Part shown: positions 10,567 through 18,232 of the stretch, piece after piece | How the letters are laid out: the number at the start of each line of letters is the position of its first letter | Position numbering within the stretch: the first letter of the stretch is position 1 | NCBI GenBank assembly: GCA_020536535.1 | Contig: JAHLWZ010000237.1 | Location: 1-39,941 of the forward strand | Origin: Pelomyxa schiedti | Lineage: Eukaryota; Protista; Evosea | Direction: 5' to 3' | Length of the DNA stretch: 39,941 nucleotides | The notes under the pieces: generated by a model | Databases searched by the model: none | Seen by the model: the letters and a program-made list of their open reading frames with translations, nothing else | What the model was told of the DNA's origin: nothing | Translations under genes and position numbers: made by a program

Positions 10567-11776
10567 TTAGCCAAATACACGTAAAGTGGTTGTGATAGGG
10601 CCTCTACAAATGGGGCATGTTTTGACACTTGGTGCGCATGTGGAACAGAGGCACCTATGTCCACAAGGCACAATTGCTAGCTCCCGTTTGTTTGCAAGGC
10701 ATATAACACAATCTGTATCCTCTGTTGTGGTGCTTGTTGTAGTTGTGGTGGTTTCTGTTGGAGTTGAGGTTGATGGTGCTGTTGGGGATGATGTTGTTGA
10801 GGTGGTGCTTTGGTGTTGGGTGGGAGGAGAATAAAATGTGTTGAATATCTTTGAAAACCAGGAGGAAGTTGTTGGTGATGCAGATGGTGATACTGTAGCG
10901 GGTGGTGCGTGCACCTTGGGGGTCTTACCCAGTGTTGTAAAGAAGTCCACCGCATAGTTAACATATTTCATATCCGGCGTAGAACAACTTGTAAGGTCAA
11001 TTTTATCATTCAGGTAAACAGGCGGCCAAACCTAGGAAAACATTGGATGGTGATTCAACAATTTAGATCGGTTCGCATACACCCAGGCCTAAGACTCTTT
11101 GGGGATGTGGTGGAGGAAGCTCGCTGCCTATTGAATCTACATAGTTGTAACTTCCAACAGCAGCTGTACATATCAACATGCAGGAATTGATATTTGGTGT
11201 GTACACTACAGCCTTTGCAACCATATTCTTTTTTACAGTCACATCCTCAAGAGTAGCAATGACAAGACAAGTGGAGGCTTTTGTAAGCACAGTGTGCAGG
11301 GGGAGAACTTCAATCCTTCCCAAAGCCTCTGACATGGTAGTTTCATTAAACAGATGTGCCCTCATATCAACTTGTATAAGCTCCTTGATGTTAGGAACTA
11401 TTTTTGTGTGTATGTGTTATTTTTACAAACACAGGTTTTATTACGCCAGCTATGGTATGACGTCGCATTATAAATAGCAATTGGGCATGAAAGTACAAAC
11501 AATTGTCATCCCAGGTGAAGACACGACACCCCAAAAGTGCCAATTCACCCGTAATCCTCCTTCCCACCTACGAAAATTGAATCAAATTTCAATATCCGTC
11601 CTCTGTGTGGTCCCATAATAACCCCACCCAAGCAGTAGCAGGGGTGAGTGTGGTACCTTTCCAGCCCCAACGACTCCGACGTTGTACCCCTTGGCCCTCA
11701 CCTTGGCACACACTCCACGTCTGACGTCCACCTCCCCGGTGCACGTCGACAAATCAGGGGGCGCACTCGCTGACAT
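10567..11776 (-). CDS. Putative E3 ubiquitin ligase with a C-terminal IAP/MUL1-type RING (C3HC4); 5' structure uncertain
   Basis: CVICLANKRELAIVPCGHRCLCSTCAPSVKTCPICRGPITTTLRVFG* preceded by a Thr/Ser linker. Upstream ORFs 11063-11365 and 11582-11776 are on the same strand. Confidence 0.75.
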
Positions 11777-12039: not shown

Positions 12040-15000
12040 ATGCACTGTGCCTCTACGGTCTCTGTGGCTTCCACCCATAATGGCGATTTTGAGACCACTC
12101 CTCTGCTGCACAGCGGGGATTGTTCCACCCATCCCACAATGCAATCCGCTGCCTCTGATTCCGCTGCTTACAATACAACAAGATTTTCCCCACCTCTTGG
12201 AAGGAATCATATGCCTCAGACTCAGTCCTTTGGCGTTGGATCCGAAATTCAACTCGGTCTCCTTGTTCAAGGACAAGACCGACATCAAAATCTAACAAGC
12301 ATTAGTTCCAGCTCAATTACTAGTACTGCAAAGAAAAATACTCCCATCTCTACCTCTACGTCTACGTCTACTTCTACTTCTGAGTGGCCCGCATTCAATT
12401 CTGATTATGACATGAAGTGCTATTCAACTTGGCAGGTTTTCTTGAGGCCTATACTGACCCCTGAAGTCGGTGCCGCTCGGCCGGTTGAAAATAAGGCGAG
12501 TGCCGCTGCGATTCCTTCTAACAGGGATGGGAATAATTCCACCGTATCCGACACTACCCAAACCACGACTACATCATCATCATCAACCACTGACCTTAAC
12601 ACCACGACATCAACAACAATATCTAACAACACTTCCGTACCAGTGGAGGCTCTAAATTTGGGGTCCAGTCAAAACACAGCTCCACTTATCGAAGATGATA
12701 CTGAAGAGTACGAAAATCTTGACGAGACCTTGGATATGATTGGACTGGTTGCAGGGCTGCCAACAACAACCATGAGGAGTGGCTCTAATTTCGACGTATT
12801 AAGCTGCTGCTCCAAGGAGATGTACGCACATGGTACGCACTTTTCGGGAGACTCTCTCATTCCAAGGAACGTGGACATCTCTGAAAATGAAAGCACTACT
12901 GTGAAGTTCTCCTTGAGTGAATCATGGGAATACTTCCTTGGATTTTACAAGGTTTGCGCCTTTCATTGTTAATATGCTTGCCCACATATTAAATCAGTGC
13001 GGGGCAGCTATCAGATTTGGGGGTGGCGTGGCAATGGAAACACCAGAGTCCGACATCAGGGTTCACATTAGTTCAGATACTAAGCAAGGGTACGTTGTTT
13101 CATTTGAGTCTTCATTGTTCCCTGGCACTTGGGTTGCGGCTCCCACTCTCAGTGCAAGTGAAGAGAAATCTCCATCAATCCCCCTCTGCACGACGCAGGA
13201 TCACTCACAGAGAGCTTTCTTTTGTATGTTTACCAGTTTGGCTCAAATCCAGCTGACTCAGTGGCCTTAGACATCTCCCTATGTGACAACCGTAAAAAAC
13301 TGGAAGACTCCCGCAATACTATTCGTAAACTGAAGAAGTGGTTGATTCCAGGTTCAAATTCCTTTTTTTTTTTTTTTTGTTTTAACAACTAACTAAACAC
13401 AAAGCATTGCAGTTTGCGGATATTCCTTTGGAGAAAAGTATGGTGTTCCGTGCACTAACCAAAATGGATATCTATAAATGGGCATTACCTCTTGACACGG
13501 TGCTTGCCCTTCCTCATCGCTTGCGGGCTCCAAAAAAAACGTTGATCCTGCAAAGTCTTTTTAGGATTTAATTGAACCTTAGGGAAACCCAGACCTTTCT
13601 TTATGCACTGGAATTCCTTGACGTTAAACCAGGGCAATCACTTCTTCAAGTGAATGTCGGAACGGGAAAAATTGCTCAAATTCTGTGCCATTTACTTCGA
13701 GACGACTCCTGTTCATTCAGATACACCGGGTGGGATATTGATGCGTGCCTAAATTCATGGATAAAGTACGCCCTTTTTATCCAACTTTCCCTGAACACAA
13801 ATGAATGATCACAATCGTTGTTAGGTACACCTTTCGGCACCGCTTCAGTGAGGCACACAGAGTCTCAATCACTGTTCAAAATTGTTTTACTTTTAGTACG
13901 TCGTATAAGGAGAATTTTGATCGGATTCTTTTGCGTGGAAAAGCCCCACAAGGGAGATATTATCAAATAGCCTCACTTCTCAAACCGGGTGGAATCCTTG
14001 TGGTGATCCCTTTAATTTAAATCAACAACTCCCTCACAAAATTCGAAGGGTTCATTTGAAACCTTGTCTGGTGGCAAGTTGTTTCAAGTGCGAAAAGCTT
14101 TAGATGGAACATTATCAAGAACCATTATTCCTGTTTATGATGGTAAAATATTATCCCCTCCTTCAAAAGTAACACCATTGAGTCTCAACGCAGGCATTCA
14201 AATGGAAATTCGTAACCTGTTAGCTCCACCTGTCATTGCTGAAATAAAAGATAGGGTAACCCTTGAAGTTAGGTTTTTGTGGTTTTCTCCTTACATGTCA
14301 TTTAAGGTTGCACAGTTTGCAGGCGACTTAGATGACGAAGAAGGTGTGTTTAAGTAGTCTTGTATAGTTCCTCTTCCTGAAATCTTTCAGAATTACGGCA
14401 ATGGTTGTGTTATTTTGGAGATGCATACAATATGAATTTGAGTAAATATGCCTCTATCATACTCAGTAATGGCTATCCACTTCCCCTCATCAGAGAAGGT
14501 TCTTTGTGGAAATGCATTTGCGGCATCTCAAAGCACCTTCTTTCTTTCTACAGGTGGTATTGCAGTTGAAGATCTGACCCAGCTAGGGATTCCAATGTGC
14601 GATGCCACTGGTCTTGCATTTGCTGTGTCCAAGTACGCCAAATTCATGGAGGATCGAGCGGAAGCGTCTTCTTCTGACACAAAAAGTTCAAGCGCCAAAT
14701 TTCGCTCTTGCGGATCTTCTAACTATGAGTCCAGAGAAGGTCAAGGCCATTGATATTTCCGTGGTAAAGACTCTTGTCAACCTCCTGCGTGTGGATTCAG
14801 TGTTGTCAGAATTTGAAGTCATTCTCGAACTCACGCTGCATTACCATGACTACATCCAGTGGAGAGCTCTAATGGTGGAGTCATTAATTTCGGCCATTAA
14901 TAACGAATTGACTCCTCTCAGGCCAAGGAAATATTTGGCACAGTAGAACAACCAATCAGCGTTCAAGAACTTTCAATTGCACCAATGTTGACTTTTCCAA

Positions 15001-16224
15001 ATAGCAAGTCTCCTGTGACACTCATTTCAGAGGTTAATTGATAACATTTCTTTTGTTTTTTTATATTTATGCAGAGTGCATCTATCGTGCCTCAGACTGG
15101 AATGGTTGATCATTCTTTTGTCTTCTCAGGTGTGTTCTTGGAAATAATGGAGCTGCAGAGGTTTCCGTTCGACAGACAGGTACCGAAATTTCTTTGTTGT
15201 GGTCTCACATTTGTCTGAAGGTCTTGCACATTGAAATGGCTCATGATAGAAAGCATCAGCAAAACATCAGTGTCACATGGAGAGAACTACCAACAAAAAA
15301 TCCGTGAGCCTCCATGCACTTTTGAATTTACCCTTACAACACAAAAAAGAAATGAAGATGATTTAGCCATGATATCTCATGACCGTGAATGGGAAGAAGC
15401 CCATGTGTCGATATACTACCCCCGAGATACAAAATCCAACCTGGTTTGTCCTCTTCCTTAGTAGATTAGGGTTCACAACACGTAAAAGGTGATTGCCGGC
15501 AGAGTTCAAAGTTGAGTTTTCCTCCAATTATGATTTTGCACTTATTTTTTGGACATTCCAGGATACTCGTCGTATTTCATGTGGAATGTCGTGTTTGTGG
15601 TAAACTAAAGCACCTAAATTCTTTTTCTCCACTAAACACAAGGCAGATGTTACTGATTGTTTCCATGTCTTTTCTCACATGGGCTCTCGCTCCTGAAGAG
15701 GGTGGAGACAGACTCAGCCTGAACCTTACCCTTCTGCTCACATCTGTTGCCTACAAGGTAATTCTAAAACATTTCCTTTTCCATTCTAACTGTGTGCAGT
15801 ATGTTATAGCAAGCTACTTGCCTAAAACAGCATATCTAACCATCCTGGACCTCTATGTGCTTTCCTCATTTGTGCTCCTGGTTTTTGTCATTATCGAAAA
15901 TGCAATTGCAGCCCTCTGTGACTCCCCAGCAAATAGAAACCTTGACAAAATATCAGCCATAATCCTTGTCACGGTAAGATAAGCCACTTTCAACTACAAG
16001 TTGCTCACAACTTACTATTTTCACAGACATGGCTCTCAATCAACGCACTTATGGTTCTAGGTTGCATGTTTGGATTCTTCCGGTTGCCGTGGTGCCAGGT
16101 GGATTCACAGCAGGTCATAATGAGTGCCAAAAAGACCAAGTTCCTTGGCTTCCTCTCACGCAGCAAGGCATTCCTCAGTCCCTTCAACCAACAACAGGAA
16201 CAAGAACAGGAACAAACACCATAA
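12040..16224 (+). CDS. Chimeric Cys-less (Pro-loop) pentameric ligand-gated ion channel subunit with N-terminal S/T-rich region, PCMT-like methyltransferase domain and sterile-alpha motif; multi-exon
   Basis: MTase: ALEFLDVKPGQSLLQVNVGTG...GWDID...FDRILL...LLKPGGILV. Sterile-alpha motif: ELRQWL...LSKYASIILSNGY...EDLTQLGIP. pLGIC: LRVDSVLSEFEVILELTLHYHD, PMLTFPNS, Pro-loop MELQRFPFDRQ (15147-15179), M1, M2 GDRLSLNLTLLLTSVAY, LPKTAYLTILD-M3 and M4. The exons from the start through the Pro-loop join in frame via short GT-AG introns; the two junctions just before M1 were not fully resolved. Confidence 0.85.
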
Positions 16225-16410
16225 TTAAAGTGGGTTTTTGTGAGATACCCTTTTGCCAGAGAATACCCTTTTTGGTGGTCACCACCGCAGTAGCGAGATA
16301 TTACGTCGATCTGCTACACTTTCGGTAACGAAAGGGACGGGTGTGGAGGACTAATAAGAGGCAATAAATTCAGGAATTATGGCCATGAAGTTTAATGGTT
16401 ACTGTACATG

Positions 16411-18232
16411 TTATGACGAGGTCTGTACTATGATGTGGTCGTGTGGGAAGTTGTCCTGCAGAGCTTTTTCAATGAACATCAAGGTGTTGGTGGTGGCACT
16501 CGGGCAGCCGCAACAAGCTCCCGTGTATTGCACAAATACCTTCCACATGGGCTTGCTCTCTGTTTTGAGTTAGTTACAACTGCAGCTGTGTTTTTGGGAG
16601 GAGACTTACCGGGATTGGTTGTTGTTTCATCAGCAGCAGGCTGCACAAGCTCCACGCCTGTGATGCCAACACTGCCGCCATCAGCAGCGAGTGTGGGAAG
16701 GACCTTCTCAGTCAATACACTTGACAAGGTTGCCTCGCGCTGGTTCGATGGAATTTGCATGAGGCTGGGTGGGAATGTTGTGGAGTGCATTGCTGAGCTT
16801 GAGTCGTGGTGAGGTGGTTGTAGTGGTGGCGTGCTGTCCGGCTCTTCTTCCCGCATAGATTTAAGGATATCCACGAGATATATTTTCCTCTTGTCGTGGC
16901 CGCCTGGGGCAATGCATGATTTACAGTAGCCTACAGATTATTAAGGCTTCATTCATATTAAGACACTATTGAATGTGTACCTCCCGCTTTTGTGAATTGG
17001 GTAATTTCTTCCACAGTCTTCAGGTTATTTAACCTGAACATGCTTTATTTAAAATGGGAAAGATAGGTGAATGGAACTTATACCGAATTGCATCCTTGAT
17101 GGAATTTAAACTGACACGAGCGCACTCACAAACTATCTTTTGAAGTGTTGTCAGAGAAAAACACTGTACAAAAACTTATTACGCACATCTTCATCTTCCA
17201 GAGAATTCACCGATGCTCCATTAGCACTGGCGACTGCCCGTTTTATGACATCATGAGCCATCACACTGCAGTGCATTTTCTGTGGTGGGATTGCAGGCTT
17301 GTCGGGGCTGTCTCGAAGATAATTTTCCACTGTTAAATTCTAGTGAAGCCTTGTTGAGAAGAAAGATAGGAAACGGAGCCAATAAACCGTTATCTTAAGA
17401 GCTTCTTCTGGAGTTTTTCCAACACAAAGTTCAGCAGCCGCATCACTAGACGCGATTGCCGTACCACAACCAAATGTCTGAAGTAATATTTATACTCTAA
17501 AAATGAACGAATGCGCACATACCTGAAATTTTGCATCTTTGATAACATTTGTCTTATTATCCACAGCCCAGTACAATACAACTTTATCACCACATGCCTC
17601 TGCCCCGTATGAAGCCACTATTATTGTTACCAAACAAAAAACAACCAAAGCAACAACAAATCGCAATCCAAATCACAACCACCATCTAATGCAAACACCA
17701 AGGATTGCTATTTTGCCTCGCGGCCCTCGGCGGAATCACAATNNNNNNNNNNNNNNNNNNNNNNNNNNATTCTCAGCACTGGAGCTTTCACAAAAAAAAA
17801 AAAAAAAAAAAAAAAACCTCAAACCCACACACAACTCGAACAAATAGACAAGCCACAGTCAGGCGTACCAACCAAATGGCAACCAATGGCAGTGGCGTGA
17901 TCCTCGGTTATTGCACCCCTGTGCGCGGGTGCCTCCATCCTCCTCAGCACCTTGTCGCTGTACTGCGACCACAGCGACCCCCCGACCAGCGCATCCCCCC
18001 CTCCCTCCCTCTCCCTCCCCCTCATCTCCACGCCCCGCCTCTGCCGCCCCCCTCCCGTACCCGTGCCCGTACTCGCAGCAGCAGTGGCGGCCCCCCGCAG
18101 CTGCCCCTGCCTCGCGGTAGCCACGTGCGACACCCACGCCGTACCAAGCGACGTCCCCAGCCCCTTGCTTGTTGTGCTCATGCGCACCATCGCCATTCCC
18201 CACGTGTCTCTCGCAATTCCCCCCCACATCAT
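16411..18232 (-). CDS. nifU: NifU Fe-S scaffold, epsilon-proteobacterial type (IscU + central 2Fe-2S + Nfu domains), with an N-terminal extension; start may be at 18232, 18196, 18190 or 18181
   Basis: [114 protein letters not shown] and [11 protein letters not shown]. The first intron contains a gap and an artefactual insert. Confidence 0.93.
17645..17791 (+). repeat. Inverted copy of a ~121-bp piece of the P5A-ATPase 3' region, interrupted by N, inside the NifU intron (probable assembly artefact)
   Basis: Reverse complement of 18554-18674 and about 18775-18894, with an internal N run and a poly-A junction. Confidence 0.8.

Follow-up and report, generated by a model that had tools for sequence, protein, structure and literature searches.

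We analysed a stretch of 39,941 nt from the amoeba Pelomyxa schiedti (contig JAHLWZ010000237.1, referred to here as the window) and find that a spliced gene on its forward strand, at 12040–16224, encodes a pentameric ligand-gated ion channel (pLGIC) subunit of the Cys-less Pro-loop type fused to a stack of N-terminal domains. The beta-sandwich of this subunit is predicted to be capped by a disordered Ser/Thr-rich tail, a beta-trefoil-like domain, a pseudo-methyltransferase domain with the protein isoaspartyl methyltransferase (PIMT) fold and a sterile-alpha-motif (SAM)-like domain, in that order. The fusion is real, is expressed and exists in several copies. With its probably dead PIMT domain, the gene is best described as a variant in architecture of a channel family that is already known. 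The explanation we prefer, to which we assign a probability of about 0.6, is that the protein is an inverted Cys-less pLGIC subunit with a cytosolic regulatory cap.

The fusion is documented most directly by a 1661-nt contig from the single-cell RNA run X1, which extends from 13891 to 16243 and ends in poly(A). Fifteen GT-AG introns have been removed from it, and what remains reads through 539 codons without a stop until the TAA at 16222–16224, with 29–30 stops in each of the remaining two frames. This one frame joins the C-terminal half of the methyltransferase domain, the SAM-like domain and the Cys-less channel. A first-pass annotation made from the sequence alone had proposed a single spliced frame through these parts, hinging on a 49-nt intron that restores the frame between the SAM-like domain and the channel; the X1 contig bears out the frame from the C-terminal half of the methyltransferase onward and has that intron spliced. 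The annotation had also named the case that would speak against it, separate transcripts for the two parts through a stop at 14753, and the stop at ~14751–14753 is unused in X1. Two other runs that span the whole stretch, of a type not on record, contain none of the 15 joints.

Further upstream, RNA covers 12105–12284 and 12376 to 12949, and the depth of the bin 12868–13038 (6.36, equal to 8.7 × 125/171) is consistent with removal of the intron at 12952–12997. No RNA contigs lie over 13381–13890. This gap leaves room for a 5' part (tail, trefoil and the first PIMT helices) that is a separate gene, with only the methyltransferase core, SAM-like domain and channel joined, which we consider very improbable. 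A T-rich repeat at 13351–13391 interrupts contigs here, the phases of the introns at 13224–13270, 13352–13404, 13541–13582 and 13766–13824 would keep one open frame, and the PIMT fold requires helices from both sides of the intron at 13352–13404. The order of domains is moreover the same in five paralogues, and four GenBank proteins are fused. The 5' join thus rests on the paralogues, on a fold that straddles the junctions, on the GenBank model and on cDNA that comes from another Pelomyxa species. The predicted product has ~1074 residues from the ATG at 12040, or 1041 from the ATG at 12139; translation may start at the latter, because a template-switch adaptor that marks the end of one cDNA falls downstream of the first ATG, and 12139 is the next in frame.

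A search with the M1–M3 stretch retrieved the window's own database protein, KAH3765081.1 (P0001 in our set; P. schiedti, 1054 residues). The fused gene model is therefore already in GenBank, under the uninformative name "GABA receptor subunit gamma-3", and Pfam annotates the channel half alone. Judged against the paralogues and the RNA, this model appears wrong at two junctions (13766–13896 and 14256–14306): it omits 13825–13896, which is coding according to the paralogues (24 residues missing), so that the X1 contig begins within a GenBank intron, and it retains 14256–14267 (12 nt, 4 extra residues), which are removed in the RNA. At position 15931 one X1 contig and the assembly are set apart by an A-to-G difference, which is absent in X2–X4 and probably reflects an allele or strain. 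The assembly as a whole is 52-Mb, with introns of 40–60 nt.

The channel part is a clear member of its family. Pfam profiles match both its sandwich and its membrane region, and the Cys-less Pro-loop and four transmembrane helices described in the first-pass annotation are confirmed. With a family profile, the best match in the Protein Data Bank (PDB) is ELIC (E 5e-20), and sTeLIC, GLIC and GABA-A subunits are also matched. The Pro-loop, the Arg before M1 and the M2–M3 Pro are invariant across the family alignment. The sandwich (residues 691–880) contains no cysteine, leaving a Cys-loop disulfide without basis despite the GABA receptor name. M2 aligns to ELIC without gaps and places Asp at −1', Arg at 0' and Leu at 9'; the M3–M4 loop is short and mostly acidic. 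Given Asp at −1', a position where an acidic residue is typical of cation channels (PMC9874803), and a Leu 9' gate as in ELIC, the channel probably conducts cations. The residues at −1' and the neighbouring pore mouth vary among the paralogues. Together with the already degenerate methyltransferase and the lack of a known agonist for any member of the clade (PMC4795631, PMC9874803), this variation would suit a protein that assembles without conducting or that only modulates other subunits, and so is a scaffold in the membrane made out of the parts of a channel. The invariant Pro-loop, pre-M1 Arg, M2 pore register and M2–M3 proline make this improbable.

The orientation of the channel is the point at which we depart from an ordinary receptor. 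By hydropathy, the sequence upstream of the ligand-binding domain contains neither a signal peptide nor a membrane helix, with ~880 residues lying before M1, and the four full paralogues have no hydrophobic 19-mer above 1.5 upstream of the Pro-loop. Bacterial pLGICs carry a hydrophobic leader ~103 residues before the Pro-loop in 14 of 14 cases (11-residue score 2.47–3.14); in all 55 Cys-less relatives from eukaryotes whose sandwich is complete the upstream maximum is at most 2.2, with a median of 1.55. We also calculated a charge bias, defined as the K+R count of the M1–M2 and M3–M4 segments minus that of the M2–M3 and post-M4 segments, counted from the alignment. This K+R bias stands at +4.15 in the bacteria, whose M1–M2 and M3–M4 loops are cytoplasmic, as against −1.9 for Archamoebae and −2.7 for the remaining eukaryotes, and the corresponding net charge bias is +4.0 in bacteria versus −3.9 and −5.6. 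The usual place of SAM and PIMT domains is inside the cell. The absence of leaders, the reversed charge bias and the usual location of these domains together suggest an inverted insertion that is clade-wide. The inversion by itself, with the sandwich in the cytosol, we hold to be more probable than not. The first-pass annotation had suggested a neurotransmitter-receptor homologue in an amoeba. Its family assignment stands, and a problem of topology had gone unnoticed: domains of three kinds that mostly act within cells share a side with the "extracellular" domain although there is no signal peptide, a sign of an inverted channel and not of an ordinary receptor of the neurotransmitter type.

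Several points weigh against an inverted channel with a cytosolic cap. The K+R bias of the window's own protein is 0 in the chosen windows (a basic cluster lies further downstream of M4). The topology is read from hydropathy and charge heuristics alone, the positive-inside rule holds less strictly for eukaryotic proteins, and database proteins may carry wrong starts. The bacterial control consists of a single family of near relatives (43–64% to the query), without an animal Cys-loop control. Beta-trefoils are found on both sides of membranes, the model of the SAM-like domain is of low confidence, and the selectivity of the pore is read from one residue, at a position that varies among paralogues. 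In a conventional orientation, the N-terminal stack would be moved outside the cell or into a lumen by an unrecognised signal, in the manner of DeCLIC, and the trefoil would act as a lectin. To our knowledge, the sandwich lies outside in all characterised pLGICs, the trefoil has the ricin-B and AbfB lectins among its structural neighbours, and the tail, with its five sequons, has a mucin-like appearance. We nevertheless find this arrangement unlikely, since neither the four full paralogues nor the 55 relatives have a leader or a membrane helix upstream, the charge bias is reversed, and the stack contains SAM and PIMT domains.

Leaderless proteins with reversed loop charges include Holothuria P0026 (named glycine receptor alpha-3), Durusdinium P0159, Nonionella P0156 and others; animal and algal Cys-less members are so affected, many of them annotated as glycine or GABA receptors. 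Three further Cys-less channels of 719–779 residues (P0047, P0048 and P0110) have post-M4 extensions of ~350–400 residues without a clear Pfam domain, which would be cytosolic too if the clade is inverted. As a control, we used metagenome-assembled-genome loci (L033–L046, many labelled Myxococcota or Deltaproteobacteria) that encode ~810-residue pLGICs with a solute-binding protein of family 5 (PF00496) fused after M4, so that the sensor domain is C-terminal rather than N-terminal.

The methyltransferase-like domain retains a complete fold. Searches were made exon by exon or with database proteins, and the fold was taken from the model of the closest paralogue, P0154, which includes the exon part that P0001 lacks. 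This model superimposes on PIMT with Z 18.6 (197 residues, rmsd 3.1), N-terminal helices included, as compared with Z 12.5 for the next methyltransferase family, and a Foldseek comparison with PIMT gives E 1e-9. The best profile match is human PCMTD1 (E 1.6e-4); PCMT scores above the Pfam cut-off in the cDNA orthologue P0152, while single exons give weak PCMT or methyltransferase hints only. The PCMT-like assignment of the first-pass annotation was accordingly right as to fold and too short in extent, as it placed the domain at 13430–14150.

The sequence motifs of this domain have decayed. Motif I (D/E-x-G-x-G-x-G) has Gln or His at its acidic position in the six fused copies, and between one and several of its glycines are gone, in ways that vary from paralogue to paralogue. 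Every fused copy examined lacks the isoaspartate-site motifs (the pre-motif I T-I-S-A-P with Thr/Ser, the C-terminal Y-V-P-L type and the post-motif III pocket); such PIMT motifs have been tied to isoaspartate binding and catalysis (PMC12590147, PMC11522691). In the stand-alone PIMT genes of this genome these motifs and motif I are preserved, and its PCMTD-like genes are likewise intact. Because the isoaspartate-site motifs are absent and the glycine motif is broken, the domain is probably a pseudo-enzyme that is catalytically dead. Gating by S-adenosylmethionine (AdoMet), S-adenosylhomocysteine (SAH) or isoaspartyl peptides, which the first-pass annotation had put forward, is for this reason weakly supported. 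A domain that acts as a true ligand sensor or enzyme would fit either orientation, more naturally the inverted one, and in its favour are the complete fold in the paralogues examined, an acidic residue after strand beta2 that is retained in 5/6 copies, and the nearest relative, PCMTD1, which binds AdoMet and isoaspartate without catalysis (PMC12590147). PCMTD1 retains motif I, however, whereas the fused copies have lost its glycines in different ways, and we rate such gating as quite unlikely. Residual binding of AdoMet or SAH as a cofactor is possible.

The domain next to the sandwich is likely, though not proven, to be SAM-like. A nine-sequence profile matches the SAM of Caskin-1 (E 1e-5), and the predicted model has five helices at a predicted local distance difference test (pLDDT) score of just 50–63; Pfam returned no SAM match, so the sterile-alpha motif of the first-pass annotation is backed by profile and model and not by Pfam. 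IcmE, the top-scoring match of the SAM profile, was rejected as a repeat artefact without any single significant stretch. On the other side of the methyltransferase, residues 287–385 form a conserved all-beta domain whose exons are matched in five paralogues, and which the first-pass annotation did not have in its list of domains (Ser/Thr-rich region, methyltransferase, SAM domain, channel). Beta-trefoils dominate the top 50 of a fold search throughout, with a best Z of just 7.1; two of three foils are modelled at pLDDT 63–80 and the first at <50. Its Atlas neighbours are ricin-B, AbfB, fascin and FRG1, and Pfam matched no trefoil family. The top Foldseek match, the IP3-receptor trefoil (E 0.02), is not significant and was not used.

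The gene belongs to a family. Six further channel loci are present in the P. schiedti genome, five of which carry, within ~3 kb and without a change of order, the exons for trefoil, methyltransferase, SAM, sandwich and membrane helices, typically at 30–90% identity; the sixth is interrupted by a contig end. In a second species, Pelomyxa sp. JSP, the transcript open reading frame P0152 begins shortly ahead of motif I and continues through the whole channel. In a tree from a quick search, the sequences from Archamoebae fall together on a single branch (SH-aLRT 95), the channels group with protist and invertebrate Cys-less sequences, and two SAM-only channels (P. schiedti KAH3763826.1 and one from Mastigella eilhardi) are sister to the branch with all PIMT-fused copies. 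The SAM cap would thus predate the Pelomyxa–Mastigella split, with trefoil and PIMT added later. The PIMT part probably derives from a PCMTD-like gene, as the fused profile matches Pelomyxa PCMTD-like loci best (E 1e-4, ten loci tested), not canonical PIMTs. The genome holds at least three PIMT-type and two PCMTD-like loci (G000 C937, C805, C965, C676 and C867; L023–L032), and C676 has two PCMTD-like motif I segments ~900 nt apart. Word-index searches found the trefoil–PIMT–SAM cap in Pelomyxa alone; as they are insensitive, and failed to pick up P0009, a paralogue already known, they do not prove that the cap is confined to this genus. The same insensitive method found no stand-alone relative of the methyltransferase domain, and prokaryotic genomes gave no matches when scanned with a profile of the family alignment.

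An inverted subunit with a cytosolic cap could work as follows. In the absence of a signal peptide, M1 would serve as the signal-anchor and the ~880 preceding residues would remain in the cytosol, leaving the channel upside down in the membrane of the cell surface or of an organelle. It would probably conduct cations, possibly as a heteromer of paralogues, and would be opened or tuned from the cell interior, with the pseudo-PIMT, trefoil and SAM-like domains acting as binding and scaffold modules coupled to the gate through the sandwich. The combined proposal that the whole eukaryotic Cys-less clade is upside down and that the pseudo-PIMT is a cytosolic sensor (of AdoMet/SAH or a protein partner) gating the pore is tentative, and we think it doubtful as a whole. 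The clade spans flatworm, echinoderm and many protist channels with no known role, and no ligand is known for it (PMC4795631, PMC9874803). If it is inverted, transmitter screens from outside would miss its ligands, since agonists belong on the cytosolic side, and the inversion would bear on the origin of animal Cys-loop receptors. The Pelomyxa fusion supplies natural sidedness markers and may itself mark the eukaryotic Cys-less channels as facing the cytosol; it would also add an ion channel to the cases in which the PIMT fold has been taken over for regulation without catalysis.

Table 1 Features of the fused channel gene and its transcript, in window coordinates.
Feature	Position	Strand	Basis or remark
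Whole coding region	12040–16224	+	21 exons, 20 introns of 41–59 nt; frame reconstruction, RNA, GenBank model
Ser/Thr-rich, poorly conserved N-terminal region	12040–12890	+	31% S+T, no hydrophobic leader-like stretch
5' end of one cDNA (template-switch adaptor)	12105	+	loose end in X1, from a single and possibly truncated molecule
Beta-trefoil-like domain	12898–13287	+	split by introns 12952–12997 and 13224–13270
PIMT/PCMTD-fold methyltransferase-like domain	13306–14246 (limits approximate)	+	fold of paralogue model; profile match to PCMTD1
Degenerate motif I	13641–13673	+	Asp/Glu and first Gly of PIMT replaced by Gln and Asn
Exon, strand beta3 to motif III	13825–14002	+	whole exon matches paralogues at 44–73%; first 72 nt missing from GenBank model
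SAM-like helical domain (likely)	14340–14654	+	profile, helical model
Intron between SAM-like domain and channel, 49 nt	14686–14734	+	GT..AG, CTAAC branch; spliced in X1, 134 letters on short side
pLGIC beta-sandwich ("extracellular") domain	14735–15570	+	PF02931 E 1e-5, 25.5 bits against a cut-off of 26
Cys-less Pro-loop (F/Y-P-x-D type)	15147–15179	+	invariant in family alignment
Transmembrane helices M1–M4	15573–16071	+	PF02932 E 2e-7, above cut-off; M2 register from ELIC alignment
Introns spliced in X1, first five	14003–14048, 14143–14193, 14256–14306, 14344–14390, 14499–14553	+	RNA
Introns spliced in X1, next five	14686–14734, 14875–14921, 15033–15074, 15180–15220, 15304–15349	+	RNA
Introns spliced in X1, last five	15444–15488, 15511–15561, 15600–15646, 15758–15799, 15974–16026	+	RNA
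Poly(A) site	16243	+	19 nt past stop codon; loose poly(A) end in X1; the end in X2 is at 16242

The channel gene lies head-to-head with a RING-finger gene on the minus strand (10567–11690; C3HC4, PF13920 E 7e-15 at 10570–10971). If the transcript at 11501–11689 belongs to the RING gene, adaptors at 11689 and 12105 bracket a divergent promoter of ~415 bp. A convergent spliced gene on the minus strand (16350–17600) seems to end just downstream of the channel gene, and its longest open reading frame piece (16482–16874) has no Pfam match.

Literature on the trefoil–PIMT–SAM–channel architecture, on Pelomyxa ligand-gated channels or on inverted pLGICs was not found (most subscription journals lay outside the search). 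The eukaryotic Cys-less Pro-loop receptors were surveyed by Jaiteh, Taly and Henin in 2016 with the termini trimmed, and the authors called for a study of architectures; the terms "signal peptide", "amoeb", "methyltransferase" and "sterile alpha" do not occur in that text (PMC4795631). The Pelomyxa genes share the Cys-less Pro-loop, beta-sandwich and four helices of these receptors and differ, within our insensitive searches, by the trefoil–PIMT–SAM cap. The SAM-capped channels KAH3763826.1 and that of Mastigella eilhardi likewise have a SAM-like domain directly before the sandwich; unlike the fused Pelomyxa genes, they have no PIMT or trefoil. ELIC and sTeLIC are the best PDB sequence matches of the channel and have the same M2 register and an acidic −1' residue, whereas the bacterial pLGICs we measured, which are others than these two, have leaders and basic M3–M4 loops and the Pelomyxa channels have neither. 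The methyltransferase-like domain resembles PIMT, PCMTD1 and a PIMT subunit carried by Paracoccus complex I in fold, strand order and the PCMTD-type signature before motif I, and non-catalytic use of the fold has precedents in that subunit (PMC11522691) and in PCMTD1, an AdoMet-dependent receptor (PMC12590147). PCMTD1 keeps motif I, while the fused domain is more degenerate, lacks the isoaspartate motifs and is attached to a channel. DeCLIC offers a structural precedent, described as the one pLGIC with a modulatory N-terminal domain whose structure had been solved as of 2022 (PMC9897478, PMC12664993). There too the additional domain is joined to the sandwich; it lies in the periplasm and binds calcium, whereas the Pelomyxa cap consists of three other domain types and is probably cytosolic.

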